A stretch of 64,000 bases of DNA from Chara braunii (GCA_003427395.1 BFEA01000016.1:552867-616866); one strand, 5' to 3'. Shown: positions 1 through 44,501, counted from the stretch's first letter. Numbers and translations are program-made. Notes: generated by a model not told the origin, from the letters alone.

Positions 1-2920
1 GGGTAAGGGCAGTCCAGTTGTGCGTATTCTATCTATTATTTAGGCAGATCAGATACACTCTTCTATTCAGGTGAGTCTGATCGTATGCCATAGGTGAGGG
101 GGTTTATTAAAGGGAAAGAACTGAATNATCTAANGAACTACTTGGGCAAATTGANGTGNGATTGTNAGAGATGCTTGTTTATGCATGCCTATGGGCTCTC
201 ACTTGGGGCGTCTTTTTGATAGGATAGTTGCTTTANATGCTCACCAAGTGNTAGAGCCNCAGGTAGGTCAGATGGATGATGGGAGGGGGAACTTGGGATG
301 AAGATAGGACTGACCCTCCTAAGAAGTAGGGTCAATGCTAACCCACAATCTCACCTGAGGTTGTGCGAACTGTNATTGATCCTGAGTNATCAAGCNNGTG
401 TCAGGAGTTNGTCCCAAGTGTAGCCTTGNTTGTNTTTTCATCTTTCANCTTCGTATAAATCTTGGCAGCCTCNTGCTCCTACGGGAAGCGCTACCGAAAT
501 TTCTACAAATCTGAAAGAGTTAGTCATTTTGAGCTTGTAGAAATTCTGAAAAGGCACTTTTCCTACGGGAAGCGCTGCCGAAATTTCGTAGAATTTGAGG
601 AGTTANAATGTTTTTCAGCCAGAAGTTACTTAACAGATCTATNCTGACTAGAGGAGATACTTAGTGAGTTGATACTAGTAGAGGAACTAGGATACGACTA
701 GGGGGAATGTTTTCCCCTTGGCACAGGCATAAGTAGTACTCGTTTTTTGGCGTGTACTGTGATGCAGGTTTCCGTGTTGTCGCTTGAAGGCTTGATCTGT
801 TCAGCCTTTTCCTTCGAAAGATCACTCTTCTGTTATCACTGATAACAGGTCGGTTGCCGAACCGTCGGTTTACGACTCAACCCCAATTCACCCTCAATAC
901 TCAACCTAAAGAGGCTTTAGCCCTGGTGTTTTTATTGTTTTGTTGAGGTTTCACCCGGACTTTTATTGAATGGNCATTTAACAGAGGTACTCAGTATTTA
1001 TTTATGGTCGGTTGGCTGGAGGTTAGGGCTTGCCTGGCTAAAGCAAGGGGTATGAGTGTGGAGGTTGGTTGGAGTTGACTNCGTGTAGTGCATGAATCTT
1101 TGNTTGACTCTCTGATGTGATTGCATGTACGTGTGAGAGAGTCTCGTTGGATTTATGTTGAGTGATACTGCTTGGATTCAGATGGGCAAACCACATAACT
1201 GTCNTGAGAGTGAACTACCCCACAACCCTTTGTTTGAGTGAGACTGTTTTATCCCCGTCCTGCTGAAGTTATAATCTAAGTAGGCGTACGCTCACAGAGC
1301 TAATCCCGNCAATGCCTCTTCTAGTGATATTAAGNGTGCTTGTTNTATCCTTGTTGGGATTTCTTTGGTGGAACGATAAAGCTCCGGGCGNAAGGGTTAG
1401 CGTGTCGCTGGTGGTGCGTCAGACAACTCACCACCGCTCCTAATTCCTTCCTGCCCTAGAGGTCGTCTTACCCCGCACCCTTTGGGACACCTAAGGGTGC
1501 AGAAGACGAAAATGCCCTCAGGCCTGTTGTGCGCTCGCCAAAGGGTTACCTCCCCTTAGCGCGCCCCTCAGCCAACGCCTGAGCGTCGGATGCAACCCCA
1601 TGACTCAAGATAGGCCATTTGGGTATGGGCACCGCATAATGCGCCGTCATCACAGATACTCACGTAGAGCTACATAATGAATTGGTGTGTGCGGGTACTG
1701 CGCCTGCGCAATCTTTATACTAAGTCCATGCGCGCAGCACTCGCCGATTCTCGCACTGAAAGTTATGGGTCAGGCGGCGAGACCAAAAGCGCGGTGTGGC
1801 CGATAGACTCAAGGGGGGGTCGGTATCGCGAAGCGACACTTGGGCGGAGGACTAGTCCCAGTCGGCCTATGGGAGTCCGTGTACGGGCCTCACTATCCCG
1901 GACATCGGATAGCCTACGGGTAGGACTTTGGGCCTCCTCCGCACACGTGTTGTTTGGGCTTGCCTACCCCTTTCATTCTAGGAGGCCACTAAACTAATGA
2001 GAGCTGAAGTGAGTTTTCGTTTTGAATTTTCATGGTTGGAAGTTATAGTCCATGGCAACCATCAAAGTCAAACCCCTTGATGCTTGACCGCCACGACAGC
2101 TTAAAAGTTGTCTACTCAACCCCTCTGCCCCGGGTGTAGAAGAGGGTGTGGTCTTCAACCGCACACGGCGGTTGTTTGGCGTCGAGAGGTTACCCCTGCA
2201 AAGCGTCTGTCAGCCGAACGCAACCCCTTAGATTATCAAGGGCCGCGAGGCTACGAGTACCACATAGTACCCCATCAGCGCGAACGATTGCGGGTGTCCG
2301 CATGGCTGGTTGAGATAAGAAGGCCACCCGTTTGCTCGACTTTTATATGGAAGTCCGGCGCGCGATACTTACCTGATTCTCGTCGCCTAAAGTTATGGGT
2401 CAGATACTGAAGGGACTAGGAGTTGTTGCGTCGTGGCGTTGTGTGTGGTGTTTGTTTGTGTGTGTTTTATGTGTTATAAGTGGTAGGTGTGAGTGTTGTG
2501 GTGTAACGCATGGTGTGTGTAGTGCATCCCAGTCGACCAGCGTCGAGTCGCGTTTGGGACTTCAGCCCCCCAGTACGGCGGCTCGCGTACGGGTTCGATT
2601 CTTGGGTGTTCGACCGCGCGTAACCCCCTATGCTACAACGAACGAGAAACGCCCTCGGCAAGGCCACCTTTGGAATTCCATACGAAAGCTTTCGCATGTG
2701 GTTCAGTAGCTCGGCAGGGATACGCCCACCTAAGGGATGGTGACAGCTCCCGCAGGTGGAGGTAGGCGGTGCCTCGCTTGACTCCGTCCTGTCGTAGGGG
2801 CTCGCGAGAGGTACGGCTGGCGCACTCGGCCGGAGCGGCAAACGCTCTCCGCGACTAGTCCTGCCAAATCTTGCGTGACGCGGCCGGGAGGGTCCCCGTG
2901 GGGGACCGATGCGCTCGACA
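1..2920 (+). mobile_element. Giant LTR copy A (3' part; start lies outside the window), apparently inserted into copy B
   Basis: 820-1130 matches 8045-8355 and 2030-2920 matches 9020-9991. Ends in the family terminus CCGATGCGCTCGACA, followed by CCGG. Confidence 0.8.
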
Positions 2921-2975
2921 CCGGGGATGTCCGGGTGGCCTTCGAAAAAATGCAAAGGGGGGCCACTACGGGTGA

Positions 2976-4034
2976 TTCCTTCGGGACACCCATTGAGGTT
3001 GAGGCTAAACAGAGAGGGCTCGTACGACCCCTATGTGGGGTGAGGCACGAAAGGCCTGGGGATGAACTCGGACGCGAGCCGGGTCAGGTGCACGCGCGAG
3101 AGCAAGGGGGAGGCCGAATGGCCGTCGGAAGACCTGCGGGGCATCGCCCCGGCCGAAGTCCTTCGGCACATCCGTTAAAATTGGAATAATACAGAGAGGA
3201 TTTGCAAGGCCCCCACGTGATGCTGACACGTATAAACCCCAAAGGAGGCGCCAGGTTCGTGTGCCGAAGTAGGGTGGGGTCGCATCCGTACGGAGTTGGG
3301 AAGTTGTGGGGCACTGCCCCGGCCTAAGTTCGTCGGGATGTCCGTTAAAACTGGCGTGATACGGAGGAGGTTCGCCCGACTACTGTGCCTAAGGATGGCA
3401 TGTGCCAAAGTCCGGGAGTAAAACCGGACGTGGGCCGGACTAAGGGCGTGCAAAAGGTGGCGAGAGGGGGTAAGCAGGCCGAGTGGCCTTTGGTGCCGTG
3501 GCAGGGAGGTTAGCTCATGGTCGCCGTGCAAGGGTGATATCCCAGGGGCCTGGAATGAACCCGGACGCGGGTTGCACCGGGTGTGTGTAAATAAGAAAGG
3601 GGACAGGTCCGAACAGTTGCTGGAGTTAAGGTGGTAGGTGCCTGAACCGGGGCCCGAAAGGAGGCCAGGTTCGTGCAGGGATAGCAGAACAGAAGGAGGA
3701 ATTACTGCGGGAGGAATCGTTCGGGGAAAGTTTGTTACGCCGGGAAGATTAGCACGGCCCCTGCGCAAGGATGGAGCATAAGGATTTGGAAAGAAGCCGG
3801 ACGCAGGTTGCACCGGGTACATACAGATAAACGGGGAGGCGGGGGGGGGGGGGCGATCAGATCATCCCGTGGTTGGGTCCTCCCGGCGGCTGCCCGTGGC
3901 GGTAGTGGAGAGGGGCCAGTCGGCACGAAGTCCTTCGAGACTTCTGTTAAAATTGGAACGATGCAGAGAAGATTAGCCTAGCTCCTACGACCAGGCAGGG
4001 CATATAAATCTTGAGGGTAGCTCAGGTTTCTTTT
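2976..4034 (+). pseudogene. U6: Tandem array of at least 5-6 degenerate U6 snRNA copies inside LTR B
   Basis: 3948-3977 TAAAATTGGAACGATgCAGAGAAGATTAGC and 3744-3773 GAAGATTAGCAcGGCCCCTGCGCAAGGATG each match the conserved U6 sequence (recalled) at 29/30. Further copies start near 2976, 3158, 3328 and 3490. Confidence 0.9.
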
Positions 4035-4789
4035 ATTGTTATTTTCTTTTCTCTATCGCGGTCGTTTTGTCGGAGACGAGAATCACCGGATCGGGCGCTG
4101 CCAGGCAACCTGTTGAGCGGCCGCAGGAAACTGAGGAAAGCGCTGGGCGGGGTGCCGTTGACGTCAACGGGGTCGAGCGAAGAACGAAGGGGTGAATTGG
4201 GATGGGAAGCTGCGGCAGGTGCACGCGGCGCAGCGGACTCGGAGGTGTCGGAGAGGCGAGGTCGGGGCGCAGTGAGGAGGGGGCTCTAGGCCAGGGCGAA
4301 CGTGACTATGAAGCCAGATTTGGAGAAAAGTCAGTAAAGCAGGGGAGTGAAATGATATTGAAAAAGGGGGAAAGGAATCAGTGAGATGCCGATGTACATA
4401 GCCGGTCACCGGTGGTAGGTTCTTTCGAGCTTGGTCGTCTTGCTGATCAAAAAGGGGGGGCGGTGAGGTGCTGCGAAGTGGGTGGTGTTCGCGGACCTAC
4501 CCTGCAGGATGGCGGGAGATCCGCCCTCGCTCTGTTTGTCGAACGAGAAGCAAGCGGGGGCAGAGCTGGGACGGACGAGCGGGCCTACCTACTAAGACGC
4601 GCCAGGCCCCGTGCTGGTAAAGGGATTCGACTTTGCCTCTGCATCTTGTCCGACCTGGGGATTTAGTCGGACCACGCTCATCCGACGACAGTGATAGCCA
4701 TGGTGATTGCGAAGGTATCGATCCACGTACCACTGATAAGATTGCTCCAGGTCTGAGGGGCGACGGGTTGAAGACGTAGGCTCGGAGTC

Positions 4790-4860
4790 AATGACCAAGC
4801 TTAGTTGGTTAAACGCTCGAGTCGTGTTCGGAAGGTCTTGGGTTCAACCCCCACGGCCCT
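4790..4860 (+). other. tRNA-derived segment with Pol III A/B-box-like motifs inside LTR B
   Basis: AGCTTAGTTGG (A box/D arm) and GGTCTTGGGTTCAACCCCCA (T arm/B box) at tRNA-like spacing. The acceptor stem is poor. Confidence 0.5.
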
Positions 4861-6054
4861 CTTGGGCATCAACAGGCTGTTTTCTAGCAAGGTGACAACA
4901 GGCCAGCTGCGTGAGCTGCCGATCGGACTGTTAGCCAATGAGCTGACTGTCCTTTCGGCCTGCGCGATTATGGACTGTGGGCTGCGGACAGGAGGCTATG
5001 GACTGCAGACTGCGCACTACTGTGGACTGCGGGCCACTGTGTACCGCTGCTGCTACTGCTGATCTACATCGTTGTGTGCTGTTGCAAGGGCGGCCGCTGG
5101 GCACGCAGTCTTGCTGCCTTATGTTACTGTGCACTATTGCTCGCTGTGTACTGACGCTGTGCTTGCGGACTAAGTGCGGGCAACGACTGTTGTAGACTGT
5201 TCGCGTTTACTGTTGACCGTCGCCGTGCACGGCTGCGGCCTACGGCTGGCTGGGCACAAGTTACACGGTTGCTGTGGACTGCGCCCGGACTGCTGATTGC
5301 GGGCGACTATGACTCCGGTTGTTGACCATCGCCGGATACAGCTGCTTCCTGCCGTTAGTGTTGCGTGTTCCTGCATACTACCATAGGAGGTGGCTGGTTG
5401 TTATGCGCTGCGGTGGATGGATGTAGGGGAGTGACCGGGCTGGAAGGGGGGGGGTTATTGCTGCAGATTGGGGGGTCATCAGGGGCGGGACATCAGCAGT
5501 TGATTCAGAATTGACCGAGCTGTCACATTGGCTACCACTTGTGGGGCCCTCAGGCGCTGAAGGATTGAAGACCCTCTCGAGCGAGTCTGAGTATATCTTC
5601 CCTGAATCTGAGAGTCTCAAACCTCCTCTCCCTGCCCTTCTTACTCTAAGTCTGGTCCTTTGGTTCTGAGAGGAAGGCGGCAGGCGGGCTTGTGACCCGT
5701 GAGCCGCGCCAAGGCCTTTGTGGGAGGTTCGCCCCACCGATTGCGGGAGCTCTGCCGGGACTCAGGAGGAGTCCTGGAGGCAGGGAACTGAGTGGTGATT
5801 CCCGGACTCCCTCTATAAACCCAGTTATAACCCCTACTTGTACACCGTTCTACGGTTGACTGAGCGTATGGTGTGAACCCTGTATTTGATTTTGGGTTGA
5901 CTTTCGGGACATAAGTCAGACTAAAGTAAACGAACGTGTATGCAACCTCAGTTTCAGCCTTGTTGATTGTCTAAAAGCAGATTGTGAACAAAGGGGGTGC
6001 ATCTGGAGGAAGGTTGGGAGGAAGGCAGTATTGTGTGCAGTTTGACTGGGTCGT

Positions 6055-7005
6055 TAAGGCTGGAAGGTCTCCATAAGTTTGGGGAAGCCCAGCGCTTTGT
6101 TTATTTTGGTTTTGTGTGGAACAATTATGCCGCTCTATAAGTTTAGGTAGCCTGAGTGCTCTGAAGGTTGGGGAGTCCCCATAAGTTTGGGGAGACCCGG
6201 TGCTGTGAATTGTGTGGAGGGTCGGGACGCTCTATAAGTTTAGGTGACCTGACTACTTTGACTTGTGAGGGTTTGATTGTGGATGATTTTCAGGGACTCA
6301 GGGCGCTCTATAAGTTTAGTTACCTTGGGTTGCCTTGTTTTACTTGGAGGTTCTTTCAGTTTCTTTGATTCTGAACGAGGAGGTCTGAACCGCTCTATAA
6401 GTTTAGGTGGTTCAACCCTTCTCCTGTTTGTTATGAGGGGGTAATTCTAGTAGGGGGCAGACCGCTCTATAAGTTGAGGTGGCCTGGCCTACTGCCTCAT
6501 ATGGACTGGATCAGAGAGAAATGAATCTGACAGAGGATCAGACCGCTCTATAAGTTTANTTAGTCTGACCCAATGCCTCGCACATGTTGGAACCCAATGA
6601 CTATAATTTGGTTATATTGTACTACTATATTACTGGATCATAATAGGCCAGTCAGACCGCTCTATAAGTTTAGGTAGCCTTGCTATAGCTTATCATAACT
6701 GAAGAGAGTATAATTAAGAGGCATAACTGAATGTAAGCCTGGGAAGGCTGAGCAATGTTCTAAGTTGAGCGACCCAGCCTTATGTCCACTTTAAGATTAA
6801 GTTCAGAGAAATATATACAACTTGGCTATTTAAACAATTCAGGGCGGCTAGAATGGTCTAGTCATATGCCTAAAGAAGAGATAAATAGTTGTGTCCTCTG
6901 TTTGGTGTATATTTGGCTAAGTCAGATGCGCTNTATAAGTTTAGGTGATCTGACTTTAGGCCTGGTTAAGTTGGGCGCGCTCTATAAGTTCAAGTGGCCT
7001 GACCT
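6055..7005 (+). repeat. Hairpin array I in LTR B: ~12 stem-loops with conserved loop GCTCTATAAGTTTAGGT and non-repetitive spacers
   Basis: Motif near 6070, 6131, 6177, 6228, 6304, 6391, 6463, 6544, 6658, 6929 and 6978, mostly flanked by its own inverted repeat (TGAACC/GGTTCA 6386-6414; AGTCAGAT/ATCTGACT 6920-6955). Confidence 0.9.
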
Positions 7006-7289
7006 ATGCCTTATGTAAGTTGGGTATAAATGGGTAACTCACAGAGGGAGCATGAACTATTGCTTGCTAAGAACTTGGGGTTGGTGAGAGTACTTACCTT
7101 TGTGGTTTGGCCTGCATGTGACTGAGTGGGATTACTACTTGGTCTGGGTTTCAGGTTGACAGGTAGTTGTTTTAGAGGCTCGCCACGTGCTAGAGCAATA
7201 GGAGTTAGTTCAATTCCTGCATTTTCTGAGCTGATTTTATTTTACTTAGATCGATTCTTGCATTTTCTGAGACCCTTGGTTATACTTGG

Positions 7290-7780
7290 GTTTGTATAAA
7301 TTTTGGCAAGCTACTTTCTCTATGGAAAGCGCTGCCGAAATTTCTACAGGTTCAAGGAGTTAGTCAAATTTTTACTTGTCAAAAGTTCAAATTGTCTTTT
7401 TTTTGTATCTGACTAGGCAAAATTGGACTTTGAGAAGTTAAGGTTAGTTCCAAATTCGGAACTTAGCCTTGTATAAATTTAGGGAAAGCACTTTTCTAGA
7501 GGGAGTGCTGCCGAAATTTTTCCAAAACTGAGGAGTTAGTAAGATTTTGTCTGGGTTGAACTCGAGTTGCCTTTTGAGTTCGAATCTGACTTAGTATAAA
7601 TCTGGGAAGTCTCCCTTTCTAAAGGGAGTGCTGCCCAAATTTCTACTAATTCGGGGAGTCAGACAAAACTTGACTTTCCAGAGTTACAGATTATTTTTAT
7701 TTTTCATATTCGAGCGTATATAACTTTTGAAAAGACACTTTTCCTACGGGAAGGACTGCCGAAATTTTCTTAGTTTAAAG
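7290..7780 (+). repeat. Hairpin array II in LTR B (about 4 long imperfect hairpins)
   Basis: Repeats of TTGTATAAAT..CACTTTTCCTACGGGAAGYGCTGCCGAAATTTCTACA. The same unit is at 450-600 in copy A. Confidence 0.85.
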
Positions 7781-8054
7781 AAGTTAGATTATATTTTGGC
7801 AGGTGGCGATTCTGGTGATCCACTCTGTATAGGGGGGATTATACCATGATCCACCCTTACTTTGGGCCCTGCTTAAAGGTAGGTTCAGGCTTAGTCAGTA
7901 AGAGGGATCTTGGATGAGAATGTGTTATGGAGTTGTATTCTCCATACACTTATGATTTCAGCTTGGTGGTTGGCCTGCCTTGTGTTACAGGTCATCTTGA
8001 CCGTTTGATTCAGGATTTTGACTAGTGTCAGCTTGATCTTACAAGGATCATCTT

Positions 8055-8073
8055 CTGTTATCACTGATAACAG
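8055..8073. other. Conserved palindrome CTGTTATCA-C-TGATAACAG in the LTR core
   Basis: Perfect 9-bp inverted repeat; also near 830, 13665, 20805 and 36449. Confidence 0.7.
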
Positions 8074-8393
8074 GTCGGTTGCCGATTCGTCGGTCTACGA
8101 CTCAATTCCAACTCACTCTCCATACCCAACCTAAAAGGCTTTAGCCCTGGTGACTTTATTGTTTGTTAAGAATTTCACCCGGACTTTTATTGAATGGCCA
8201 TTTGACAAAGGTACTGAGTATTTAATTATGGTTGGTTGAACAGGAGGTTGGGGTTTGCATGGCTAAAGCAAGGGGTATGAGTGCGGATATTGGTTTGGGT
8301 TGACCCCGTGTAGTGCGTGTTTTGTCGTTCGATTCTTGATGTGATTGCAGGTACGTCCTGTGGCTCGGATTTTGGATTTGGATTGCCTGCGAT

Positions 8394-8410
8394 CCCTTAT
8401 ATATACATAT
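8394..8410 (+). promoter_or_regulatory. Candidate LTR TATA box (CCCTTATATATA)
   Basis: C-run plus TATATA, typical of plant LTR promoters. Present at the orthologous site in C (~13290) and E (~36045). An alternative CTATAAA lies at ~5815. Confidence 0.4.
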
Positions 8411-10260
8411 GGTTGTGAGGAGTCCCACTGTGCCTGTGAGAAGTGATCGTCTCAACTCTATCTCCCTTATGCGTGTATGCTTGGGTGTACCTATGGTGGG
8501 TGTTCGCAATGCCTGAAGGGCCCCGCGTTAGAAGTCTGCTTAGAGGTTAAGACTGAGAGGCATAGGGAAAAACTTTCCTTTTGCTTGTTTGCTTCTTGGG
8601 GGGTTTCTTAGTCGGACGCTGGTCCTGGGTCGAGATTCAAGGTCCTTGTCCAGGACATCCCAAGCCCTAGACTCTGCAGGGGAGGAACTTCCCCTCGTAC
8701 AGAGCCTATCTGCATTGGTTGTTGAGACACCCAACCCTAAAGGCGGAAATGTCGTGAGGGCCGAACAGCGTGTCCCTCAGCCGTTCAATATCGTGAGCGG
8801 TGACCCCTCACGATATATTCCTTCACCCACTCAATATCGCGAGGCCGGAACTGCGATTACCACGTATGACCGACATCGTATGGTTGGTATGTGATTGACC
8901 TGCAGCCGCGCGACTTTATACTAGAATCGTACGTGCGACGCTCCCCACACTAGCGTCTAAAGGTTATGGGATCAAAAGGGGCGCACACATTGCACGAACG
9001 CTTGGGATTATTAGATTTTCGTGGTTGGACGTTGTAGTCCGTGGCAGCTGTCAAAGTCAAACCCCTTGACTTCCACCCAAACCTGGAGTAGGACTTAACC
9101 CCAGGGCCGCATGAAACGACTACCACCACAGGTATGGACCTGTGTACCACCCACTCTGCACAGAGTGCAGAAGAGGGTGTGTGGTCTTCAACCGCGCATG
9201 GCGGTTGTCCAGCGTCGAGAGATTAACCCTCAAGGCGCATGTTAACCGACACTTGAGTGTCGAAGGCGACCCTCCAGATTAACGAGGACCGCACGAGTAT
9301 AGGTACTACATAACACCCCATCATTGCAACTGCTTGCATACGTTTGCGTTGCTAGTCGATATGAGTAGGCCCTTCGTCCGCGCGGTTTTATACTAAGTCC
9401 CACGCGAGACGCCCAGCCGGATTCCGCATCGGAAAGTTATGGGTTGGCTACCGAGGGGCTAGGAGCGTTGTCGCGTTGTTTGTGTTGTGTCATTTTGCGT
9501 GTGTGTGTGTGTTCCATTTTTTTTTTGTTCGTAAAGTGGTGTGCGCGTGGGGGGGGGGGGGGGGGGATGCGTCCTAGTCGATCGACTACGGGCCACGCTT
9601 GGAACTTCAACCCCCAAGATGTCGGTTCGCGTGCGGGTCCGATAGGCGTGCTACCGCTCGTACTCCCTGTGCTACAGCGAACGAAAAACGCCCTCGGCTG
9701 GTCCACCTCTTCGATTGCAACTGATTAGCTATTGTACTGTGGACTGATAGCTCGGCGGGGATACGCCCACCGAAGGGAGGTGACAACTCTCGTAAGGTGG
9801 AGGTAAGATGTGCCTCGCGTAGGCCCTATCCTGTCGTAGGGGCTCGCGAGAGGTATGGCTGGCGCACTCGGTCGGAGCGGCCTAAGGAAGCTCCTCTTGT
9901 GTGTTCGTAACGAGGTTGGTCCAACTCCTGCGTGACGCGGCCGAGAGGGTCCCGCGTTGCCATGTGCGGTGCCGGACCGATGCGCTCAACAGCGGTGGTA
10001 TACAAGTTGCCATAAATTCTTGCCTTTGAAAAACACGTGGTAAAAAAAAAAATGTACAGATTATAAAGACTATATCACCAGCGGTCAAGTTTTTCGTGGG
10101 TATCTAGAAATCGTATTTTATTGTGAAAAATTAACAGTCTAAGTGAAATTGTCATAGCATGATAGAGACAAAAAACTGAAAGGATACGTGTGATATAAAA
10201 CCAAATTGATGTTATTGCCATAGCCTGCGGGCTTTGTTCTCTTCCAGAGCCTTTAACCCC

Positions 10261-11147
10261 TTAGGCTAAATTCTGGACTTTTATCAACTTTTGAGGTTCA
10301 AACTCTTTTTCATTCCCGTCTTCTTTTTCTTCCGGCTTTTCCGTTACTATTTGTTTTCCTTTCCCTCGTGTCTTTGACATATCCATTACCTTCTTAAGGA
10401 TTCTGACCTCCCGCGTGGCTGCCAATTGAGTCACCACTTCCTCCACTATTTTTTTAACGTCCGCCCCACCGCCAACTATGGTCTCTCTCGCTTTCCTTTT
10501 GTGCCTTTGCTGTCTCATTTGGAAGAGGTAAACTTAGTCTAATTCTCCAACTGCCATACTGTCCTTTATTGTTGCCTACATCAGCTTCTTCTCAACTGCT
10601 TTTTTGGTGGTCACGATTGCTGCCTCTGTCTGCGAGAAGTGTCTAAAAAACATGACACACTGATCTTCCTTTGACATACCTGACACTCTCCTCGCCATCT
10701 TTTAAAAGGCAGTGACAAAGGTTCCGGCCGTAGTGAAGTCAACGTGACTTAGGGCCTTACAAATTGGCCACCTTGAGCAACCCATCGCCCAAACTAAAAG
10801 CGTCTCTGCATATCGTCTTTGAAGTTGTCCCATCATCCCGCTGCATCTATTATAACGTTTTTCACTTCTGACTGCATCTCCCACAAGATACACCTTGGCA
10901 TTCGTAAAAACTTATCTGCCTCAGTAGCCTCAACCAACACTTGCTATAAAAGTTTTAACCACTGTGATACTCTTTCTCCCTTGAAGTGAAAGATATCGAC
11001 CTTCAGTAGTTGGGACCGTATCACGTCCGTTTTATCAAGTTCTTTCACAAACTCATCCGTCGATATGACCCGATTTGCAGAGCCTTCTCGCGACACCTGC
11101 GTTCCCCATTTTGACTGCCTTGTTTTTTTCTTGAAAACACAATCCAA
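10261..11147 (-). pseudogene. gag: Decayed Ty3/Gypsy gag-like ORF downstream of LTR D and its PBS
   Basis: Broken minus-strand ORFs (KVDIFHFKGERVSQWL...; basic/acidic C-terminal part) lying ~0.6 kb after a PBS; contains stops and frameshifts. Confidence 0.6.
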
Positions 11148-11707
11148 AATAACACATTATCATTCTTTTACACAATCTTGTCCTCGCTAACTCCTTTACT
11201 ATTTTTTACTATAACAGACATCATTCGAGACTTTGGTAATCGTCACTAAGATCATTCTACTGAAAGCCTATGACATCAATCCCTTTAGAGGAGGGGTCCT
11301 TGCACCTATATTAACGCATGCGCACCATGACACTTGTCATGACAACTTAGGTAGCTTAGTGACTGTGTTGAAGTACCAAAGATCCTTGTTCGGGTAACTG
11401 AACACGCAGAGTCGCAATACTGCAAATGACAATAAATCTAGGGCATTAGATACGCATAGCGTAGTCCGAATTACTTTCTGGTACCTCGATCCGCAAATTT
11501 CTAACTGCAGTTGTCAGTACTAGCCTACTAGGTGCCAAAGTACATAAACGTCCGATTGCGCATTACTATTCAATAGTGCAATCCCGTTAACACACCACAC
11601 ACCACTCACCTATTTAACACTATTAACAAAAATTGTCGATTCGTCAGGATCATCGGTCTGCTTCTAACCTAGGTTCGTTTACTAAGGACCCCGGTAGGTA
11701 TCCGAGA

Positions 11708-11725
11708 TCCCTAGCAACGACGCCA
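11708..11725 (-). promoter_or_regulatory. Primer-binding site, tRNA-Asp type (Athila-like)
   Basis: Minus strand reads ...CTCGACA-GG-TGGCGTCGTTGCTAGGGA, 15/18 to TGGCGCCGTTGCCGGGGA. All three differences are CpG-type transitions. Confidence 0.85.
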
Positions 11726-12588
11726 CCTGTCGAGGGCATTGCTCTCGCAAACGGACCCTCCCGGTCGTGTAACGCAAGATTTTGCATGACTTCGTCGTAG
11801 AGCGTTGCTGCTCCAGCCGAGTGCCGGAGCCATACGTTTCATGAACCCCTACGATAGGATAGAGTCACGCGAGGTACAACTTACCTCCACCCATGGGAAT
11901 TATCACCATCCCTTAGGTGAGTGTATCCTCGTCGGGCTACCAAACCATACAAAAGTTTTTTGTTTGCTATCGCAGAGGTGATCTTGTCGAGAACGTTTCT
12001 CGTTCGCTGTAGCATCGGGGGTACGTGCGGTTAACGTCCGAATCGGACCCGCTGTCAAGCGCATCGGTCCTACAGAGGGGACCCGTTGTCGGCCACGTCA
12101 CGCATAATTTTTCAAGACTTCATCGTAGAACGTTGCTGCTCCGATCGAGTGCGCTAACCATACCTCTCACAATCCCCTGCGATAAGATAGGGTCACGCGA
12201 GGTAAAACTTACCTCTACCCGTGGGAGTTGTCACCATTCCTTAGGTGGGCGTATCCTCATTATGCTACCGAACCACATGCGAAAGCTTTTCATATGCAAT
12301 TGCAGAGGTGGTCTGGCCGAGGGCGTTTCTTGTTCGCTGTAGTATAAGGGGTATGCATGGTCCTATGCCTCTATTAGACCAGTACGCGAATCGTCGCACT
12401 GGGGGCTGTGGTCCCACGAGCGACTCGATGTCGGTCGACTAGGATGCTTCCTTCTTACCACACGTTACACCACACCCCAAAAAAGTATCAAGTTACTCAC
12501 ACAAACACTGCTAATAATGGAAACAACATATGTTATGAAGAACAATAAAATGAACAAGAAAGTATCAAGTTACTCACACAAATCCGCT

Positions 12589-27091: not shown

Positions 27092-27093
<2 letters not shown>

Positions 27094-27164: not shown

Positions 27165-27169
<5 letters not shown>

Positions 27170-30040: not shown

Positions 30041-30143
30041 ATTCCCGATGGGAATCAAACTCTGATCTGGATTTCAGCAGTTCGAGGAAGTGTCAGTGAG
30101 GCCGTGCCAACAAAAATTACGGTCGTTGACTTATGTCAACGAC

Positions 30144-30174
<31 letters not shown>

Positions 30175-35000: not shown

Positions 35001-36749
35001 CCTCCCGGCCACGTCACGCAGGAGTTGGTTTATTCCTCGTCGCGAATACATATGGAGCTTCCGCAAGCAGCTCCGACCGAGTGCGCCAGCCATACCTCTC
35101 GCGAGCCCCTATGACAGGATAGGGCCTACGTGAGGCACGACTTACCTCCACCTTACGGGAGTTGTTACCTCCCATCGGTGAGCGTATCCCCACCGAGCTA
35201 CCAGTCCATAGTACGAAAGCTAACCAGCTGCAATCGTAGAGTTGGACCAGCCGAGGGCGTTTCTCGTTCGCTGTAGCATAGGGGGTACGCACGGTTTTAC
35301 TCCTCTATCGAACCCGCACGTGAACCGACGCCTTGGGGGGCTGAGGTCCCAAGCTCGACTCGTTGTCGGTCGACTAGGACGAATCCCACGCACCACACGT
35401 ACATCACTCTAAAGACATAAAAATTAGAATATACACTCACACACAAACAACACAAAACAAACAACGAGACAACACTCATAGTCCCTTCGTAGTCATCTCA
35501 TAACTCTCCGATGCGGAAGTCGGATAGGCGTCATGTGCGAGACTTAGTATAAAACCGCCCAGACGCAGGGCCTTCCCATATCGACTAGCAATACATGAAT
35601 ACGCAAGCAGTCGCAAAAATGACATACTATATAGCGTCCATAACCGTGCGGTCCCTCGTGGATCCAAGTATCGCCTATGACACTCAAGTGTCAGACTCGA
35701 AGTATCGTGAAGGTTTACTCCTTCACGATATTGCACGGCTGACGGAACAGTTGTGCGGCCTCCGCTGCACCTCCGACCTTTAGGCTGAGTGTCCCGGCAA
35801 GCAGGGCAAATAGGCTCTGTGCGGGGGGGTGATCCCTTCCATGCAGAGTCTAGGACCTGGGATGTCTTGGACAAGGACCTCGAATCCAGGCCCAGGACCA
35901 ACGTCCGACTAAGAGGTCTATAAAAAGCAAACAATCAGTAAAGGGAGGAAACTTCCCTTCCTATCTCAGCCTCGACCCCAATTGACCCTTAAGTGTGGGC
36001 TCCTTAGGCCACACGAACACCCAGCATAGACATATACATGTATATATATATATAAAGGGGGATTAAATATGTGACGATCACTTGTCACAATCACAGTGGG
36101 GCTCCTCACAGCCATATTATGTGTGCGATCGTAGACAGTCAAATCCAAAATCCGAACCACAGAACATACCTGCAATCACATCAAAGAGTCAACCAGAAGT
36201 CCATACACTACACGAAGTCAACTTCAACCAATCTCTATACTCATACCCCTTGCTTTAGCCATGCAAGCCCCAACGTTTGTCCAACCTTCCATATTTAAAT
36301 GCTCAGTACCTTTGTTAAATGGTCATTCAATAAAAGTCCGGGTGAAAACCTTAATAAAACAATAGAAACCACCAGGGCTAAAGCCTTTTAGGTTGAGTAT
36401 TGAGGACGAATTGGAGTTGAGTCGTAGGCCGACGAATCGGCAACCGATCTGTTATCAATGATAACAGAAGATGATCCTCTTGGGATCAACATGAATTTAG
36501 TCCAAATCCTGAATCAAACGATTGTGAGGACATGTAACACATGACAGACCAATACCCAAGCTAAATTCATAAGTGTATGGAGAATAACGCTTCATAACAC
36601 ATTCTCACCCAATGTCTTCTACAAGCTAAGCCTAGGCATGCCTCTAAGTCAGTGTCCAACGCAAAGTAGACCTATGACAACATCTCCTCTATTCAGGGTG
36701 GATTGTCAGAGTCGCCACCTGTCAAAATATAATATCATTCCTCTAAACT

Positions 36750-37295
36750 AAAAAAATTTTGGTATCACTTCCCGTGGAAAAAGTGTCTTCTCAGAACTTA
36801 TAATAACTCAGATATGAAAACAAAAAATAATATTTAATCCTGGAAAACCAAAATGTTGTTTAACTATTTGAATTAGTAAAAATTTTGGCAGCACTCCCTT
36901 TAGAAAAGAAGTTTTTCCAAATTTTTACTAGGTCAGATATGAACTCAGAAACAAGATCTGAGTTCAAATAAGATAAATTTTAACTAACTCCTCAGATTTG
37001 TAGAAATTTCAGCAGCACTCCGTTTAGAAAAGTGTTAATCCAAGATTTATGCAAAGCTAAGTTCAAAATCTAAAGTGATATTGTCTTCTCAAAGTCCAAT
37101 TTTTGTCTAACTCCCTGAAGTAACAAAAATTTGTGCAGCATCCTCTTTGAAAAATGAGGCTTTCCAGATTTTTACTAAGTCAAAAAGTCAGACAAACTGT
37201 ATCTAGAAAAGACAAAATCTGACTAACTCCTTGGTTTTGTAGAAATTTCGGCAGCACTTCCCGTAGAGAAAGTGACTTACCAAGATTTATACAAG
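36750..37295 (-). repeat. Hairpin array II in LTR E (5 units, ~120-bp period)
   Basis: e.g. TTGTAGAAATTTCGGCAGCACTTCCCGTAGAGAAAGTGACTTACCAAGATTTATACAA at ~37237-37294. Confidence 0.88.
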
Positions 37296-37587
37296 ACCAA
37301 GTATAACAAAAGATCCCAGAAAATGCGGAAATCGATCTAAGTAAATTAAACTTAGCTAAAAAAATGCAGGAATTGAAACTAACTCTTATGGCTCTAGCAA
37401 GCAACGAGCAGCTAAAACAACTACCTATCAAACCAAAACTCAGACCAAGTAGTAATCACACTCAGTCATATGCAAGGTCATACCACAAGGAGTAAGTACT
37501 CTCACCATCCCCAAGTCAAAATCCTCATAGATAGTTCATGAATCTTTCAGATGATTTAACTCTTATACCCAGCTTTCACATGGCGTA

Positions 37588-38345
37588 GTGCTAGACCATT
37601 CAGCTTAGAAACAATGTATAGCATGCCTTTAAAATATACACGAACAGGTTGCACAGCTATTTTTTTCTTCTTTGGCCATATGACTAGACCATTCAGCTTA
37701 GAAACAATGCCTAGTCGCCCTGAACTGTTTAATAGCTGAAGTTTAATACTTTTCTGACTTTGTTTTCAAAAGAAATAAAAATATGGGCAGGGGACTTAGT
37801 CATTCAGCTTGGAAACAATGCTCAGTTTGCCCATATTATTTTCAATTATACTCAGTACTTTCCTTTCTCTTCTTAATGATATGGCTTAGTATTGGACCAT
37901 TCAGCTCAGAAACAATGTTCAGTTCGCATGCAAGTATAGATAAAGTATTTTCTTGTTTATACCCAATTTATATTTATGTGCGTGGTTTTCAGGCTAAACC
38001 ATTCAACTTAGAAACAATACTTAGCCTTAGACAAAAAATTATCCCTAAAAAATAAACAAAAGACTGAACCATTCAACTTAGAAACAATATTCAACCCATC
38101 CTCAAATCATTCAAAGCATGAAGTTGAATTATTTAGTCAAACTTCAGTCAGAAACCCCAAACGAAACAGACAGACCAAGCCATTCACTTAGAAACAATGC
38201 TTGGTCCTAGAGATCAGTCAGACAGACCCTGCTAAATAAACACAACAACCAGGTCATTCAGCTAAGAAATTATGTCTGGTCCTTTAGAAAATATTCAAAT
38301 TAACATAGCCCTTAGCCATTCAACTTAGAAACAATGCCCAATCCT
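37588..38345 (-). repeat. Hairpin array I in LTR E (~9-10 units)
   Basis: CATTCARCTTAGAAACAAT with stems such as GACCAAGC/GCTTGGTC 38173-38206 and GGCTAA/TTAGCC ~37992-38026. Confidence 0.9.
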
Positions 38346-41177
38346 TGGTTGACCCGGTCAAACGCATACAAACTGTCTTCCTCCCACCTTCCCCCAGTTC
38401 ATCCCTTAGTCTGCTTTCAATCAAAATAAAGAGAAACTTAGGTTTTTCACACACATTCCTTTCATTTAGTCTGATTGAATCCTAAAAGAAAGCAAATTCG
38501 TAGGAGCACACATGCATACAGTCAGTCAAACTAAAAAAGGAAATAGTCAAACAGGGGTATAGTGGGGTCATACAAATAGAAAAAGATATACCTGATGGTT
38601 CCCTGCCTCCAGAACCTCGCGTAGGTTCCAGCAGAGCTCCTGCAATCGGTGGGTGGACTCCCCAAAGAGTCTTGCTGAGGTCCTGCGGGTTGCAATCCCG
38701 CCTGCCACCTTCCTCTCAGAACCAATAGACCAGACTTAGAGTGAGAAGGGCAGAAGGAGATGGGTTTGAGACTCTCGGATCCAAGAAAGGTGCTCTCGGA
38801 CTCGCGTGAGAGCGCCTTGATACCTTCACACAAATGAGGACCCCGCAATGGCAGCCAACCGCGTTGCAGTTTTTGTCAACTGAAGTCATAACACCATTTG
38901 TTGGCCTCCCCTTCAACGAGCTCAGCCACCCCGCCTGACTCACGACCTGGAGTATTCAGGCCATCAGTACGCTTGCAACCTCGTGGCCTTTCCTTCAACC
39001 ACTTTGCTCAGTGGATGAACAACGCACCCTCAATAGGTAAGCTTTCAGGCTAGCTGCTCATCTCTTTGTCACTCCTATTCGCCAGGAAGAGCATCGCCCC
39101 AGCACACGGGTAAGTATCGTAAACACGATCTGCTTGCAATCCCTATTCCACAAGTTGGGCAGTTCTCTCTCCTACATGTAGGTATTCAACCCCCGTAGCC
39201 CACCTCTCATTGTTCTCAAACATCGAAATGATCAGTCCCTTCGACCAGCAAGCAGGTCCTCCGCCCCCCGTGATCTGCTCCTTGATTCCACAGTCGACAG
39301 GGTAAGACAACGAACATGTCAGGATGGAATGAGTAATGCATCACCCAACAAGTGGGTCTCCAAGCTTGTGGTTCCCCTCCTTCGCTGCTCCTGTTCAACG
39401 GGGTAGGCAGGACCACAACCAGTAGGTAAGTCTTCAATCCCGTTGTTTGTTACCTCCCCCCCACCTTGCTGCTCTATGCAGCGAAACGGGCAGTGCCTTG
39501 CTGCGTCTGCCCCTTCCCGCTTCGTAGGTGGGCACTCCGACTATGAACCTTGGGCATGTGAGTCTCTCCCCTATTTATGTCTTTCTTACTTCGGTCAGTC
39601 GTTTATGCGAGACCGAACCGAATCTTTCCTGAATCCGTGGCTTGCTGGCGAGCATAACCGGATGAATCCTCCGCTCGGGCCTGAAAGCATGCGCACCTCC
39701 TCGATTACATTTATCCCCAGGTAAGTGTTGCTCTCCTCGCCCTTATCTCTGTCGCTCCCCCTGACTACCTCAGTCGCGCTCCCATGATACTTTAGTCGCG
39801 CTCCCTTGCTACCTTAGCCGTGCTCCCTCACTACTTTAGTCGCGCTCCCTCGCTATCTATCGCGAAATCTGATATAACCATCTCATTCGCAATGGTCTCG
39901 AACCTCCTGCTAGCCTCCTTTCGCTCTCGATTTCAAAGCGACTCGTGCGAGACTTTCATCTTCTCGCTCGACCATTCCGCCATCTCCATGTACTACTTCT
40001 CTTGGCTAGCTCCAAATTCACTTGCTCTCTATTGAATCTAACACCGGATTTGGATCCGCCTATCTCCAAAACCCTGATTTAGGCTCCTCTCTCCCTCATA
40101 TATACAAAAAAATTAGTAAGATAATCCTTTCTTCACCTTGTCATATCTGTTCCCGCCATTCTCTCGCGCATCATTTCTTCCTTCTACCACCTATCCTACT
40201 AACTTTCGCCTCATTCTATCAACATATTCGGGGTCGCCTGCCCCAGCAACCCCAAACTGAAATCTCCGATTCCCCCGATTTCATCAAAGATCGGGGAAGA
40301 ACTCAATTCCTTTCTTCGTCATGCCTGTGCGTAGCTTCGCCTTCTCCATCGACAGCCGTATCTGGCATACAATCCCGTCCAAGTTCGTCTCCGCTTCCGC
40401 CACTATGCCCTGCCTTCGGTCCGCTCCCTTCTTACGCCCGTTCTCTCAGTTGTTCGTCACCTCGCCTGCCCATCGCCCTGCTTACCCGCTTTTGACTCCG
40501 TACGTGGCTAGCGCACCCGTCGCAAAGTTGCTTCTCGACTCCCGCTGCACCTCTTATCCGTCCGCCGACTCGCCCCCTGCAACTTTCCTCGATAGGCTGT
40601 GCAACGCACCTCCCACCATGTAAGTCACCAATTTCACGGCCGTTCCTCCGCGCTACGTTTGTTCCATCGATGCGCAGCGCCCCGACCGCTATGTAAGTTT
40701 TCAAAGTAACGGTTGCTCTCATGCCACTTCCCTTGAAGGTAAGAACTACCTCCGTCGAGTCTTCCGCCAGTTCATCAACTGATCTACACGGCTGCCAGTA
40801 GTAACCCCTGTCTACGGCCGCCCTCGCGCTCCCATTGGTAGAACGAGCACGGATCAAATGCATCTTTCACTAGAACGTGGAAGTATGCATCGCCTACTTC
40901 CTAGGTAGATCCCCTACCCCACAACTCGCCTCTCCTTCAATTCCTTGACCCCACGGCCGCTTTCCGCAATACCTGCTTTGGCCGAATGAGTTGCGCATCC
41001 GACAACAGGTGAGCCCCTGCTTTGCCTGCTGATGGAATGACTAAATCGGAGTGAATCTTCCATCAGATCACATAAAAAAACAATCCGGCGTCATCGACTG
41101 CCCTGCTCCTGCGACCGTTCTCATGCCTTCTGGGTAAGTCCTCGACCCAATGACTGTTCTCGACAGGCCCCAGCCAA

Positions 41178-41352
41178 CCCGATGAAACTCTTGGATGGAA
41201 TTAGTGATTAGATGATGTGCTTAGTCTTTCGTCCGTTTACCCAGGTCTGACAATCAACTTGCACACGTCAGTATCGCTGCGAGTCTCCATCAGAGTTCCC
41301 TCTGGCCACACCCTGTTTGGGCATAACTCACCGCCCGCAGGTCCCAATGACT
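41178..41352 (-). pseudogene. LSU rRNA fragment inside LTR E
   Basis: TTAGTCTTTCG...CACGTCAGTATCGCTGCGaGtCTCCAtCAGAGTTcCCTCTGGC; the same LSU segment as in C and D. Confidence 0.8.
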
Positions 41353-42111
41353 GTCGTGATGGTCCCCCCCCAAAAAAATTCAAGTCTTATACCGCCTGGT
41401 CAACGGTTTCTAAATCTGGTGCCGCATCCATCCAAAAAGGACCATCGAGACACAAGCAAAACTTGATACTGGCGTTAAATAATACAACATTCAGCAAAAT
41501 TACTCGTCGGAAAGTACTGGCGGGGGGAAGAAGGAGCCATGTATACTGCCTTGGCTCTATCGACGGCAAAACCAAGGGGGATAGCCTCGTCAGGCCTTCA
41601 ACCCTTCGGTCTCCTCACACTGCTTCAAATACTCCCTCGCTGCCGCCTGTTGGCTTCGACCTCCGAGTCTCCTAGTTGACAATCCGACACCATAACCAAT
41701 AATGTTAGACCCTGGTTGGTTCTAACACAGGCGGACACCTAGATAGGCGGTTACTGCGCAACATGTAGATTTACCGAAATGTCTTCAAATTGACACTTTT
41801 TATCGACGTTGTCCTCCGTACGTACGCACAAGTCACAGCAAGTGCATCAATCAATGGGACCTAATCTTTTTAATCATAGTTTAATTAGAAATAAAGATCT
41901 GGCCGGCAACCAACGTCGACTTTCACAATCATCAAAGGGGAAACAGATCACGCGCGCCTTACGTTTGCATGCCCACCCACTCTCTTACTCTAGTCAACCA
42001 TTCAGTCAATCGTAAACTACAGACACAGTTGCGCCTCGCGCGGTATACTCAAACTTTAAACTAACCTATTTTCTGTCACCTGCAAAAAAACAAGGCGAAT
42101 ACCCTTGTAAG

Positions 42112-42603
42112 TTAGGTTAAGGGGCCGGACGTCCGGGATGTCCGAGCGGACGTCTGGTCGGCTGTGGACCGGACAGGGTATGTCCGACCTACCGCAAAAA
42201 AAAAAAAAATAATAATAATAATAAAATAAAAAAAAATTGTGTGGCTTTCACCTCGCATAAGGTGTATGCCACCACATTTAGGCTCATTTGGGCAAGTAGA
42301 ATAAACAATAAAAATCTTCAAAGATTCTAATCCCCACCGATACCCCTCCCATCCCCACCAAAACCCCTCGTACCCCCCCCCCTTACCCCAAATACTACCC
42401 TATCACCAAAAGTTTAGAAAAATCTGAAAATTTTTGTGGGGGATCTCTAGGGCATGCACAACACTGTCATTTTTTTTTTTTTTTTTTTTAATATTATTCA
42501 GAACCAAAAACCCATCATCGGGAAATCCGGACGACGGGGGTACCAGACGTATGGGGGAAACGTCCGGGAGAGACGTTCGGTCTCCGGACCATTGGTACCC
42601 TAG
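42112..42603. mobile_element. hAT-type non-autonomous element inserted in the terminal palindrome of LTR E
   Basis: 8-bp TSD CTTGTAAG (42104-42111 / 42604-42611); imperfect TIRs TTAGGT.../...ACCCTAG. Confidence 0.75.
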
Positions 42604-44501
42604 CTTGTAAGGGTATTCACACCAACAACGCCTTAGGGAGCGGACGACGTCCGAGTTCATATGACGTTCTAACTGCGCATACCTATAGTACAACGAACGA
42701 GAAAACGCCCTCGACGACCTACCTCTACGCCTGCATGTAACAACTTTCCCACGTGGGTCAGTAGCTCGGTAGGGATACACTCCTAAGGGTGGTGACAACC
42801 CCTTACGGAAGGTAACTTGTGCCCCTCGGAACCTATCATGTCGTAGGGGACCGCGACAAGTACGGTTGCCACACCCGGCTAGAGCGGTGAAGGGACGACA
42901 CAACTGCGTCCATATCAATGATTCACAAGGTTATTTTGCGTTGTCCCCAAGTTGCCTCTCGTTTCAATTTTCTTTAACTCCTGCGTGACATGGTCAGGAG
43001 GGCTCTCGCTTTTTGCGCGAAACGCGGGAGCCGATGCACTCGACAAGTGATTAATGACACATCGCAAAATATTAAATAGGGCGACTTTGGCAGTTTTACG
43101 TGATCAATATAATTGATATGATTTTAAAGAACATAAATTTAGTGAATCATCGTTAAAAAAAAAAAAATCATGGCAATAAAAAATAATGGTGAATAAAGTT
43201 GTGGCTCAATTGGTTAAACTTGGAATAGAAGTATCACCGTATTAAGATAATCTTAAAAACTTGAGAACAATTGTGGTACGTTTACAAGTTAATAATTTTC
43301 GATATGGGCACAACCTTATGTTAATTGATATCCAGAGCAAAACGTCTAAAGTGCCGATGATTCAAATAAAGGACATTTTTTGTTTTTCAATGGTGAATCT
43401 CAAAGTTATGGTGTCCAAAGATAGGGAATAAAAGTGTCCACTCTAGAAGTTGAACATCAAATGATCATTTTATTACAATGATAAAGGTCAAATGGTCTGA
43501 AACAGTTAAATTAAGAAGGATTGGATTGCTTGCACATAAATAAAAACAAACAATAAGAATGGGTTTTAAGACCTAAGAGAATCTGCAACACCTAGTTGCC
43601 CAGTTGACCTTTGGGTTGAGGTTGTTATGAGACCGTTTATTGTTTTTTTGAAGCAAAGTAGCATCAAAATTTTATGACTGATCCTTTAAAAAAAAAAAAA
43701 AAACATGCCGGTTGGGTTTTAGGCATAGGCCCATACAAGTCATTTCATCAAATCCCTTATGTCTAACATACCTTCCCTAATTAGTACCTCAAAGAGTATT
43801 TCTCACCCGCTTCATCCTTAAGATTGGGTGACTTCGAGTTTTCCTACCTTTTATAAACTTGGAGTGGACACATTCTATGATAGCTCAATATGCGGAATGT
43901 GGTGATGTTTTAAGTTAGTTTCAAAAAGCAGTATTGCACTTCACGACACAAGCAATGAAACGTGCGCAATGAAACCAAGGTGCGTCGTTTTCAACAAAAA
44001 ATGTTGTGTTTTTTTTACTTTTGACATTGTATGCGCACAATTGATTGTATATGTGTCTGAGACAAAGGGAGGTTAGGAGCAGTTGCACGTTTAAAATCAA
44101 CGAGCAACTTCGTTTTTCCCATCCCCTCTCTCTTTTTCTTTTCCTTTCTCTCTCCCCATGGAAACAAAGAGGCTCATAGCGGTGCATTACTCATGTCCCG
44201 CGATTAACCTATATGTACAGTGCATCAAACAACAAGTAGAAAGAATAAGATACTAGCCCCATAATCGAATGAAGCCATGACCATACGAGTAGGTTACCTG
44301 GGACACTAGTTGGGCAGCGAGGTCATTGTTCGGACGGTCTTCTGCCCAGATCAACCTAGGCAAGCTCAAAATGCAAGTTTTTTTTGTTTTTTTCTTTTGT
44401 TGATGAGGCATTTATGCCCTTTGTAATCCCAACTTTATGTTTGGTTATCATTGCTATTGGTTGGAGGGTGGAAGGGGGGGCGATATAAATAGGGTTAGAA
44501 T

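Follow-up and report, generated by a model that had tools for sequence, protein, structure and literature searches.

Giant long terminal repeats with host RNA pieces and hairpin arrays in a Ty3/gypsy retrotransposon family of Chara braunii

The long extreme among plant long terminal repeats (LTRs) has been held by the Ogre retrotransposons of legumes (Tat clade), with LTRs of 1.9-6.5 kb, an interior of 11-13 kb and a total of 16-25 kb (PMC6431247), and LTRs longer than 3 kb have been called infrequent (PMC3485330). A survey of 80 plant species gives element sizes of 4.4-24.1 kb, 4-bp target-site duplications (TSDs) in 6.2%, and tRNA-Ala, Arg, Asp, Lys or Trp as primers of non-chromoviruses, the Tat subclades differing in the type of primer-binding site (PBS) (PMC6317226). 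Host small-RNA sequence that is inherited with the LTR occurs in Cassandra, Helenus and Ajax (TRIMp3) (PMC10886601). In the present analysis of 64,000 nucleotides of the Chara braunii genome (BFEA01000016.1:552867-616866, referred to as the window), positions 1-43045 were found to be a nest of six related non-coding repeats, A to F, which are the LTRs of a Ty3/gypsy retrotransposon family of C. braunii.

An intact element of this family consists of an LTR, GG, a 20-nt tRNA-Asp PBS, a leader of about 350 nt, gag, DUF4100 with protease (PR), reverse transcriptase (RT) with RNase H (RH), integrase (INT), three open reading frames (ORFs) and the closing LTR. The LTRs are 5.7 to about 8.7 kb long and the whole element about 27-30 kb. 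Judged from its sequences, the family primes on tRNA-Asp, makes 4-bp duplications and leaves solo LTRs readily. An account in which these giant Ty3/gypsy LTRs took up pieces of host RNA at the RNA level and carry a conserved block and hairpin arrays selected for base pairing is considered very probable.

Full-length elements and their relation to known retrotransposons

Close RT and gag matches were all from C. braunii. A phmmer search with the longest gag piece yielded five proteins, whose genomic loci (L003 to L007) served as the sample outside the window. L003 (BFEA01000142.1) is a full element with the 5' LTR at 1830-9651, an interior of 11.2 kb at 9652-20864 and the 3' LTR from 20865, which opens with the same sequence as the 5' LTR. 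The 5' LTR begins TGTCGGCACCATTACCCTTACAAGGGTAA and ends ...CGATGCGCTCGACA, followed by GG and a perfect 20-nt PBS, TGGCGCCGTTGCCGGGGATC. Its paired LTRs are 99.8% identical over 3009 nt and the copy is therefore young; the LTR comprises at least 8479 determined bases and two gaps. Pfam domains in the interior follow the order DUF4100 and aspartyl protease, RVT_1 and RT_RNaseH, and Integrase_H2C2. Three further ORFs of 379, 129 and 247 aa, without a Pfam family, lie after the integrase (16550-18967) and are possibly accessory or env-like genes.

A second two-LTR element, L004, has an internally shortened interior and paired LTRs 97.9% identical over 579 nt; its 3' LTR (9027-16066, cut by the contig end) joined with the non-overlapping part of the 5' LTR gives a gap-free LTR of about 8746 nt. 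Two-LTR elements flanking gag and pol, whose existence the original prediction had left to be checked, are thus represented by L003 and L004. L005 and L007 contain LTR end, GG, PBS and interior in that order. The PBS lies 2 nt past the LTR end in L003, L004, L005 and L007, perfect in L003 and with one mismatch in the other three, and, where a polypurine tract would be expected, a conserved GACGGGGA..CTTAATAAGGTCCGGAAAAC, purine-rich in part only, stands before the 3' LTR in L003, L004 and L007.

All six window copies are colinear with the L003 LTR, and L003 to L007 show the same module order of terminal palindrome, array I, array II, core palindrome, 3' end and PBS, which bears out the predicted conservation of the modules across genomic copies. 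The full LTR order is terminal palindrome, U6 or large-subunit (LSU) rRNA piece, conserved block of about 200 nt, array I, array II, core palindrome and 3' end. The predicted architecture, giant LTRs combining host non-coding RNA pieces with two hairpin arrays, was therefore confirmed on full-length elements, and full-text literature searches, with Repbase and the Chara genome paper lying outside them, found no description of it, in line with the original prediction, which knew of none.

The PBS is the complement of the 3' end of plant tRNA-Asp. It is identical to the tRNA-Asp PBS published for the peanut element FIDEL, tggcgccgttgccggggat, and holds the ATHILAfinder seed TGGCGCCGTTGCC; the PBS thus suggests membership in Athila (Athila4, FIDEL). 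The order Gag-PR-RT-RH-INT and the extra ORFs with a long non-coding stretch after INT also recall Athila. Athila LTRs are typically 1-2 kb, whereas those of the Chara family reach 5.7-8.7 kb, and the 4-bp TSD is a further difference. A further resemblance to Athila is that no chromodomain and no second RNase H was seen by Pfam in the ORFs of L003; these are broken, so that absence of the additional RNase H (aRH) is not firm. The Pfam Athila ORF-1 domain PF03078 gave no match at E up to 5 in the L003 gag and post-INT ORFs, which is a weak test, this domain being found in only 16% of Athila elements (PMC6317226).

As in Ogre, the size is mostly due to very long LTRs around an interior with extra ORFs. 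Ogre reportedly uses tRNA-Arg, and the Chara PBS is of the Asp type. The Chara element has no ORF upstream of gag. Ogre is described with an aRH and a spliced intron between gag-pro and pol (PMC6317226), whereas no second RNase H was detected in Chara. The Chara LTRs are also longer than the Ogre maximum: gap-free LTRs of 7.0-7.7 kb, and one inferred at about 8.7 kb in L004, surpass the previous plant extreme, and whole elements of about 27-30 kb surpass the 24.1-kb maximum of the 80-species survey. The original prediction named Ogre LTRs of several kb as the long end, a comparison that needs refining: as Ogre reaches 6.5 kb (PMC6431247), the new LTRs extend a range and make no new category.

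Athila and Ogre are the nearest relatives known; the family works like an element of Athila/Ogre type and extends the size range, and it departs from Ogre and TRIMp3 in the features by which these could be tested here. An Athila-type tRNA-Asp PBS in a charophyte hints at a lineage older than the land plants. Common LTR finders cap LTR length near 7 kb, and genome annotation in Chara, and perhaps in other large streptophytes, would then overlook such families or break them up.

Six nested copies in the window

The six repeats of the original prediction were recognized by self-BLASTN as colinear matches on both strands with 65-85% identity. An ungapped repeat finder set to at least 200 nt returned nothing in the window; the copies differ by indels in addition to 15-35% divergence. 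The base composition of the window is patchy, and region 1-43045 has no assembly gap, single Ns aside. The window is a nest of old LTR copies, composed as follows.

1-2920, plus strand: LTR A, 3' part, truncated by the window start and colinear with B, E and the L003 LTR
447-615, plus: two array-II hairpins of LTR A, located by array-II matches
2906-2920, plus: 3'-end motif of LTR A, a match to the terminal 15-mer
2921-2940, plus: 20-nt spacer between A and B, CCGGGGATGTCCGGGTGGCC, compared by eye with CCGGGGATCTCGGCTGCC of L003 after the PBS start
2941-9991, plus: LTR B, 7051 bp, 3' end at 9991, with U6-derived tandem units 3135-4030, conserved block about 5632-5790, array I 6067-7011, array II 7282-7799 and core palindrome 8788-8816
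9992-11727, minus: start of the internal region of the element of D, with PBS, leader and gag remnant, stopping where the 3' end of B abuts
11728-12052, minus: last 325 nt of LTR D, cut off from the rest by C, aligning with the other 3' ends
12053-19754, minus: LTR C, 7702 bp without gaps, a solo LTR nested in D, with LSU pieces 18167-18277 and 18669-18941, array I about 14720-15370 and array II 13904-14430
19759-28980, minus: LTR D, main part, the 5' LTR of a truncated element, with terminal palindrome 28951-28975, LSU piece 27861-28137, array I 24449-25223 and array II 21106-21564
29702-34958, plus: LTR F, 5' part, a divergent subfamily, starting TGTCGATATTGCAAAGGG, with a U6 piece 29975-30038
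34959-42627, minus: LTR E, nested in F as a solo LTR, 7169 bp once a 492-bp insertion is subtracted, with LSU piece 41207-41335, array I 37580-38342, array II 36735-37304 and core palindrome about 35733
42632-43045, plus: last 414 nt of LTR F, ending ...CGATGCACTCGACA, aligning with the 3' ends of all copies

The hallmarks of LTRs were found at the ends of the copies. The termini read 5'-TGTCGA...TCGACA-3', the true inverted termini being only 6 bp long; this pair is present in C, E, F and L003, and D (TATCGG), L004 (TGTCTG) and L007 have variants. In a multiple alignment of the best-conserved stretch, the copies share the end ...CCGATGCGCTCGACA, a 15-mer that with up to 3 mismatches occurs 7 times versus 0.8 expected. 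The start TGTCGA(T/G)... is followed within about 7 nt by the terminal palindrome GAATACCCTTGTAAGGGTATTC in C, D and E, as predicted. In an alignment, the homology of these three 5' ends stops at ...TATTCAC(A/G)(T/C)CGA(C/T)A, in E at 42627 once the insertion 42112-42603 is removed. This 492-bp insertion, which interrupts the terminal palindrome of E, resembles a miniature inverted-repeat transposable element (MITE) with an 8-bp TSD, CTTGTAAG (hAT-like); a relative with 77% identity was seen on another Chara contig (L002, 32072-32542).

Beyond the 3' end of D, the predicted PBS and gag were both recovered. The PBS, TGGCGTCGTTGCTAGGGATC at 11706-11725 on the minus strand, begins 2 bases past the LTR end, is three transitions away from TGGCGCCGTTGCCGGGGATC and is the only such site in the 64 kb. 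The leader that follows is 79% identical to L003 9652-9747, and the gag remnant further downstream (10243-11069, minus strand) lies in one frame with about ten stop codons and was matched by the L003 gag over 11069-10243 with 42-49% identity across about 270 residues (TBLASTN, E 2.7e-52). Pfam gave no domain in the gag pieces and 30 ORFs of the LTRs and flanks, and none in any LTR ORF, as befits non-coding repeats; a protein search with the ORF from the conserved LTR 3' end gave no matches, and no tRNA gene was found in the window.

Copies C and E are insertions into other members of the family. The flanks of E, left (...GGAGATCAACGT) and right (ACGCCTTAGGG...), join into a single stretch that agrees with its counterpart in D (GGGAGATCAACGCCTCGGG) and with the 3'-end consensus of the other copies, and E was thus inserted into the plus-strand LTR F, which totals 5671 bp (29702-34958 and 42632-43045) and has only the termini and the U6 piece in common with the other window copies. 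The 3'-end motif occurs twice near C, at 12053-12067 and 11728-11742, with the last 325 nt of an LTR directly after the first, which shows that C was inserted into D; against the L003 LTR, rejoined D gave one high-scoring segment pair across the junction (D 9170-9557, junction about 9232, in coordinates of a D build with 10 extra flank bases). The predicted TSDs are present as 4-bp duplications with one transition each, CCGC/CCGT around C and ACGT/ACGC around E. No matching bases flank B, D or F; for D this follows from its being the 5' LTR of an element.

The two insertions lie about 325 and 414 nt from the 3' ends of their host LTRs D and F. In LTR coordinates, the two sites are within about 90 nt of each other and beside ACG(N) (window 11769-12353), and the 5' flank of D is likewise CACGC. 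The shared position may be a preferred target in the LTR of the family itself, or chance. Members of the family landed in one another at least twice within these 43 kb, and copies of the family's LTR, nested or adjacent in opposite orientation, were also noted in L005 (17096-23340, minus strand) and L006 (8726-9248 and 17934-23006, both minus strand); self-nesting seems common in this family.

The 20-nt spacer between A and B is, tentatively, probably a remnant of the 3' half of a PBS and the leader. B may be the 3' LTR of an element A-spacer-B that lost its interior and sits in the gag of D, a weak assignment.

The repeats could also be read as non-autonomous DNA transposons, Pack-MULE- or foldback-like, with terminal inverted repeats of about 400 bp and captured host fragments, given that E (as 34959-43045) seems to close with 400 bp that repeat its own 3' end in inverted orientation and that host fragments in a non-coding mobile unit recall Pack-MULEs. 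The inverted copy, 42632-43045, is the tail of F split by E, with F continuing on both sides; the inverted termini measure 6 bp and the TSDs 4 bp, not 8-11; PBS and gag follow D, and direct LTR copies flank gag-pol in L003 and L004. The probability left to such transposons is negligible, and the form with 400-bp inverted repeats was dropped when the short palindrome, the MITE and the read-through of F placed the end of E at 42627. The precise insertion of C and E, each with a TSD, ruled out a tandem satellite with 7-kb monomers.

It is hardly credible, too, that the gag-pol element at 47.8-53.8 kb has the giant repeats for its LTRs. That element has the same orientation as F, which ends at 43045; it belongs, however, to a family with its own LTRs of 0.85-1.0 kb and a different PBS, TGGTATCGGAGC, both seen in the intact relative L001, its RT and the RT of the giant-LTR family share only 28% identity, and no PBS was found after the 3' end of F at 43045. 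As the interior of a giant-LTR element it was ruled out by L001 and L002.

Host RNA pieces, conserved block and hairpin arrays

The LTR is divided into a hypervariable 5' third (about 3 kb) with low-complexity tracts and host RNA pieces, and conserved 3' two-thirds with the block of about 200 nt, arrays I and II, the 30-nt palindrome and the last 900 nt. Apart from its first 40 nt, the initial stretch of some 3 kb is unrelated from one subfamily to another. Host RNAs in the window were searched with Rfam at the gathering threshold, supplemented by a laxer scan, with the following result.

3158-3260 (B), plus strand: U6, gathering threshold
29975-30038 (F), plus: U6, gathering threshold
3740-3805 and 3930-4030 (B), plus: further U6 copies, laxer scan
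18167-18277 and 18669-18941 (C), minus: LSU rRNA, gathering threshold
27861-28137 (D), minus: LSU rRNA, gathering threshold
41207-41335 (E), minus: LSU rRNA, gathering threshold

Every host RNA piece lies in the sense of the LTR. The U6 piece is found at about +220 to +270 in B and F, and L003, L004 and L007 have it near +1.1 kb. All U6 copies start from model position 1; those of B, F, L003 and L007 are complete (1-105), and that of L004 covers 1-80. In C, D and E the LSU piece is located about +0.8 to +1.6 kb into the LTR, and the four matches all fall in one part of the model, 675-954, a piece of about 280 nt. The U6 unit is repeated in tandem three to four times in B, and the LSU piece is doubled in C. 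Upstream of the U6 pieces, neither a TATA nor an element like the plant-type upstream sequence element (USE) was found. The U6 scores, with a gathering score of 44, are 27.9 bits in L003, 56.8 in L004 and 71.7 in L007, and it is in the youngest element, L003, that U6 has decayed furthest, which argues against selection on the U6 part.

These host pieces resemble passengers in sense orientation that lack a promoter, and template switching of the reverse transcriptase is their likeliest origin. They would have entered as RNA, when the reverse transcriptase, in the course of minus-strand synthesis, moved onto a co-packaged U6 or rRNA and then returned; the captured pieces would then have been fixed in a tolerant part of U3, duplicated in tandem and left to decay as passengers. 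In TRIMp3, by comparison, the elements are miniature and non-autonomous and the captured 5S rRNA or tRNA brings an internal RNA polymerase III promoter (PMC10886601), whereas the Chara elements are autonomous and giant and hold U6, whose upstream promoter was not captured, or a promoterless LSU piece, and these pieces decay. The U6 and LSU pieces document cleanly, in nature, how host RNA was taken into an LTR that went on to spread, and they differ from the promoter-bearing 5S or tRNA captures of Cassandra and Helenus.

Chimeric U6/L1 retrocopies, and other products of template switching by reverse transcriptases, resemble the Chara pieces in having sense U6 from its first base, complete in most copies, joined to a retroelement and lacking the U6 promoter. 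They are dead-end pseudogenes made by the enzymes of a long interspersed nuclear element, whereas the Chara piece is a heritable part of an LTR and was spread with the family.

The block of about 200 nt is the best-kept stretch of the LTR (72-84% across subfamilies). RNAalifold gave it a multi-helix consensus of 40 pairs, 9 of them with compensated changes; several G.U pairs do not vary. The core palindrome, 30 nt, ATATCGTGAG...CTCACGATAT, is kept in B, E and L003, and the terminal palindrome is found in L003 and L007 in addition to C, D and E.

Array I has 6-11 units of about 100 nt around a TAAGTT loop, with stems specific to the unit; the arm pairs differ by unit, such as GTCAGAC/GTCTGAC, ACTAAGT/ACTTAGT, CTACCC/GGGTAG and CACC/GGTG. 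Watson-Crick runs averaged 5.1 between arms of the same unit versus 4.0 with the arms of other units, a value reached in 0 of 20000 permutations (2 of 20000 for the outer arms of C, D and E alone), and a chimera test on minimum free energy (MFE) gave 5 of 10000.

Array II comprises 2-5 units of about 123 nt, each with a hairpin of about 72 nt and some 31 pairs (z = -7.4). Over 20 units, 77% of cells were paired versus 40-56% with the partner slid by 1-3 columns, a figure biased by the structure used, which was the MFE fold of unit B1 supplied by hand; RNAalifold returned no structure for the array-II alignment. This bias does not extend to the shuffle test on double changes, in which 37 double-change cells were counted versus 18 ± 4.6 in shuffles, none of 500 shuffles being as high. 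On the sense strand, 95 G.U cells were counted versus 53 A.C cells, a surplus that leans toward this strand acting as RNA. The array-II figures support pairing under constraint, short of proving an RNA function.

From the sequence alone, only the conserved block and the hairpin arrays look selected. They would be held by selection on base pairing and would most likely act in cis on the transcript of the element or on its transcription, in genome RNA handling or as promoter/enhancer. Candidate roles were ranked as (a) DNA promoter or enhancer repeats, (b) RNA packaging or export signals and (c) small-RNA precursors.

The first of these, arrays that are DNA-level enhancer or promoter modules or by-products of palindrome slippage with no function of the RNA structure, is a serious possibility although short of probable. 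Tandem repeats are common in the U3 region of LTRs, the array-II units have a near-invariant GTATAAAT and the array-I cores TATAAG/CTAAGTT, and the number of units varies (2, 4 or 5 in array II, 6-11 in array I). The antisense strand of array II also folds with a z close to that of the sense strand, so that palindromes at the DNA level are an option for this array. These points are opposed by stems that vary between units and stay complementary within a unit, by the G.U surplus on the sense strand and by the G.U pairs conserved in the block.

It is doubtful, and less likely than DNA-level modules, that the conserved two-thirds are a functional modular RNA with multivalent cis signals for Gag binding or packaging, nuclear export or small-RNA production. 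If this were true, room for signals together with a tolerant junk region that absorbs template switches would explain LTRs of 7-9 kb. The covarying arrays are candidate cis-acting RNA signals in a retrotransposon of the plant lineage, where almost no such signals are known.

That the array-II hairpins are precursors of miRNA- or siRNA-like small RNAs is unlikely: a stem of about 31 bp within 72 nt, in tandem units, is in the range of pre-miRNAs, yet no Rfam miRNA family matches array II and the stems are broken in many old copies. In F only, a separate 174-nt palindrome at 30526-30699 gave weak sub-threshold matches to several miRNA precursor models on both strands; a diverged tandem array at 31361-31929 with an offset of about 165 nt is likewise confined to F.

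Very unlikely is the reading, after the original prediction, of the whole LTR with its host pieces as a multi-kb RNA kept by selection, a scaffold that would serve in packaging, in self-recognition or as a decoy for host ribonucleoproteins. In its favor, host pieces come back in different subfamilies and invariably in sense, some stretches of the LTR are structured and show covariation, and U6 is well kept in L007. Against this, the pieces lie in the hypervariable 5' third, which is unrelated between subfamilies, and are subfamily-specific (U6 or LSU); U6 is degenerate in L003, no promoter motif was found, and array I as a whole folds no better than shuffles. In the form put forward, the scaffold proposal finds no support.

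Several points weigh against the account of giant LTRs, capture at the RNA level and selected base pairing. The comparison beyond the window covers only five loci, and the length of the L003 LTR depends on assembly gaps. The similarity of A to B is no greater than that of B to E, which leaves the case for A-spacer-B as one internally deleted element weak. The case for template switching is a weak point, drawing only on orientation, full-length U6 and the missing promoter. For array I as a whole, z was -0.28, and only the arm tests at the level of units were significant; for array II, the antisense z of -7.0 is near that of the sense strand. The G.U excess could be partly due to base composition, CpG decay in GC-rich stems can mimic compensatory change, and array units within one LTR, or orthologous between LTRs, are non-independent samples.

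Other elements in the window

The gag-pol element mentioned above (47851-53845, plus strand) is a 5'-truncated Ty3/gypsy element of a different family with gag, PR, RT-RH and INT, the last carrying a Tf2-type SH3. From about 53233 this element has a 3' LTR of its own, which meets a gap of 795 N (53846-54640). In its intact relative L001 (2417-11175), the paired LTRs are 94-97% identical.

LTR D carries an unrelated insertion of about 2.6 kb (about 21660-24300) on the opposite strand, with an intact ORF of 374 aa (21735-22859, plus strand). RT-like motifs (GIPMG..SPPLA, YRLVDD), reminiscent of Penelope/TERT-type reverse transcriptases, were recognized in it by eye, and it had no Pfam or PDB match. 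A tandem repeat with units of 89-95 nt (23294-23600) adjoins this ORF.

Decayed protease and RT sequences of another gypsy-type element are present at about 59973-60912 (plus strand), with 42-44% protein identity to the element at 49.7-51.6 kb. The N gaps 59805-59829 and 62678-63244 lie near these remnants at about 60 kb.

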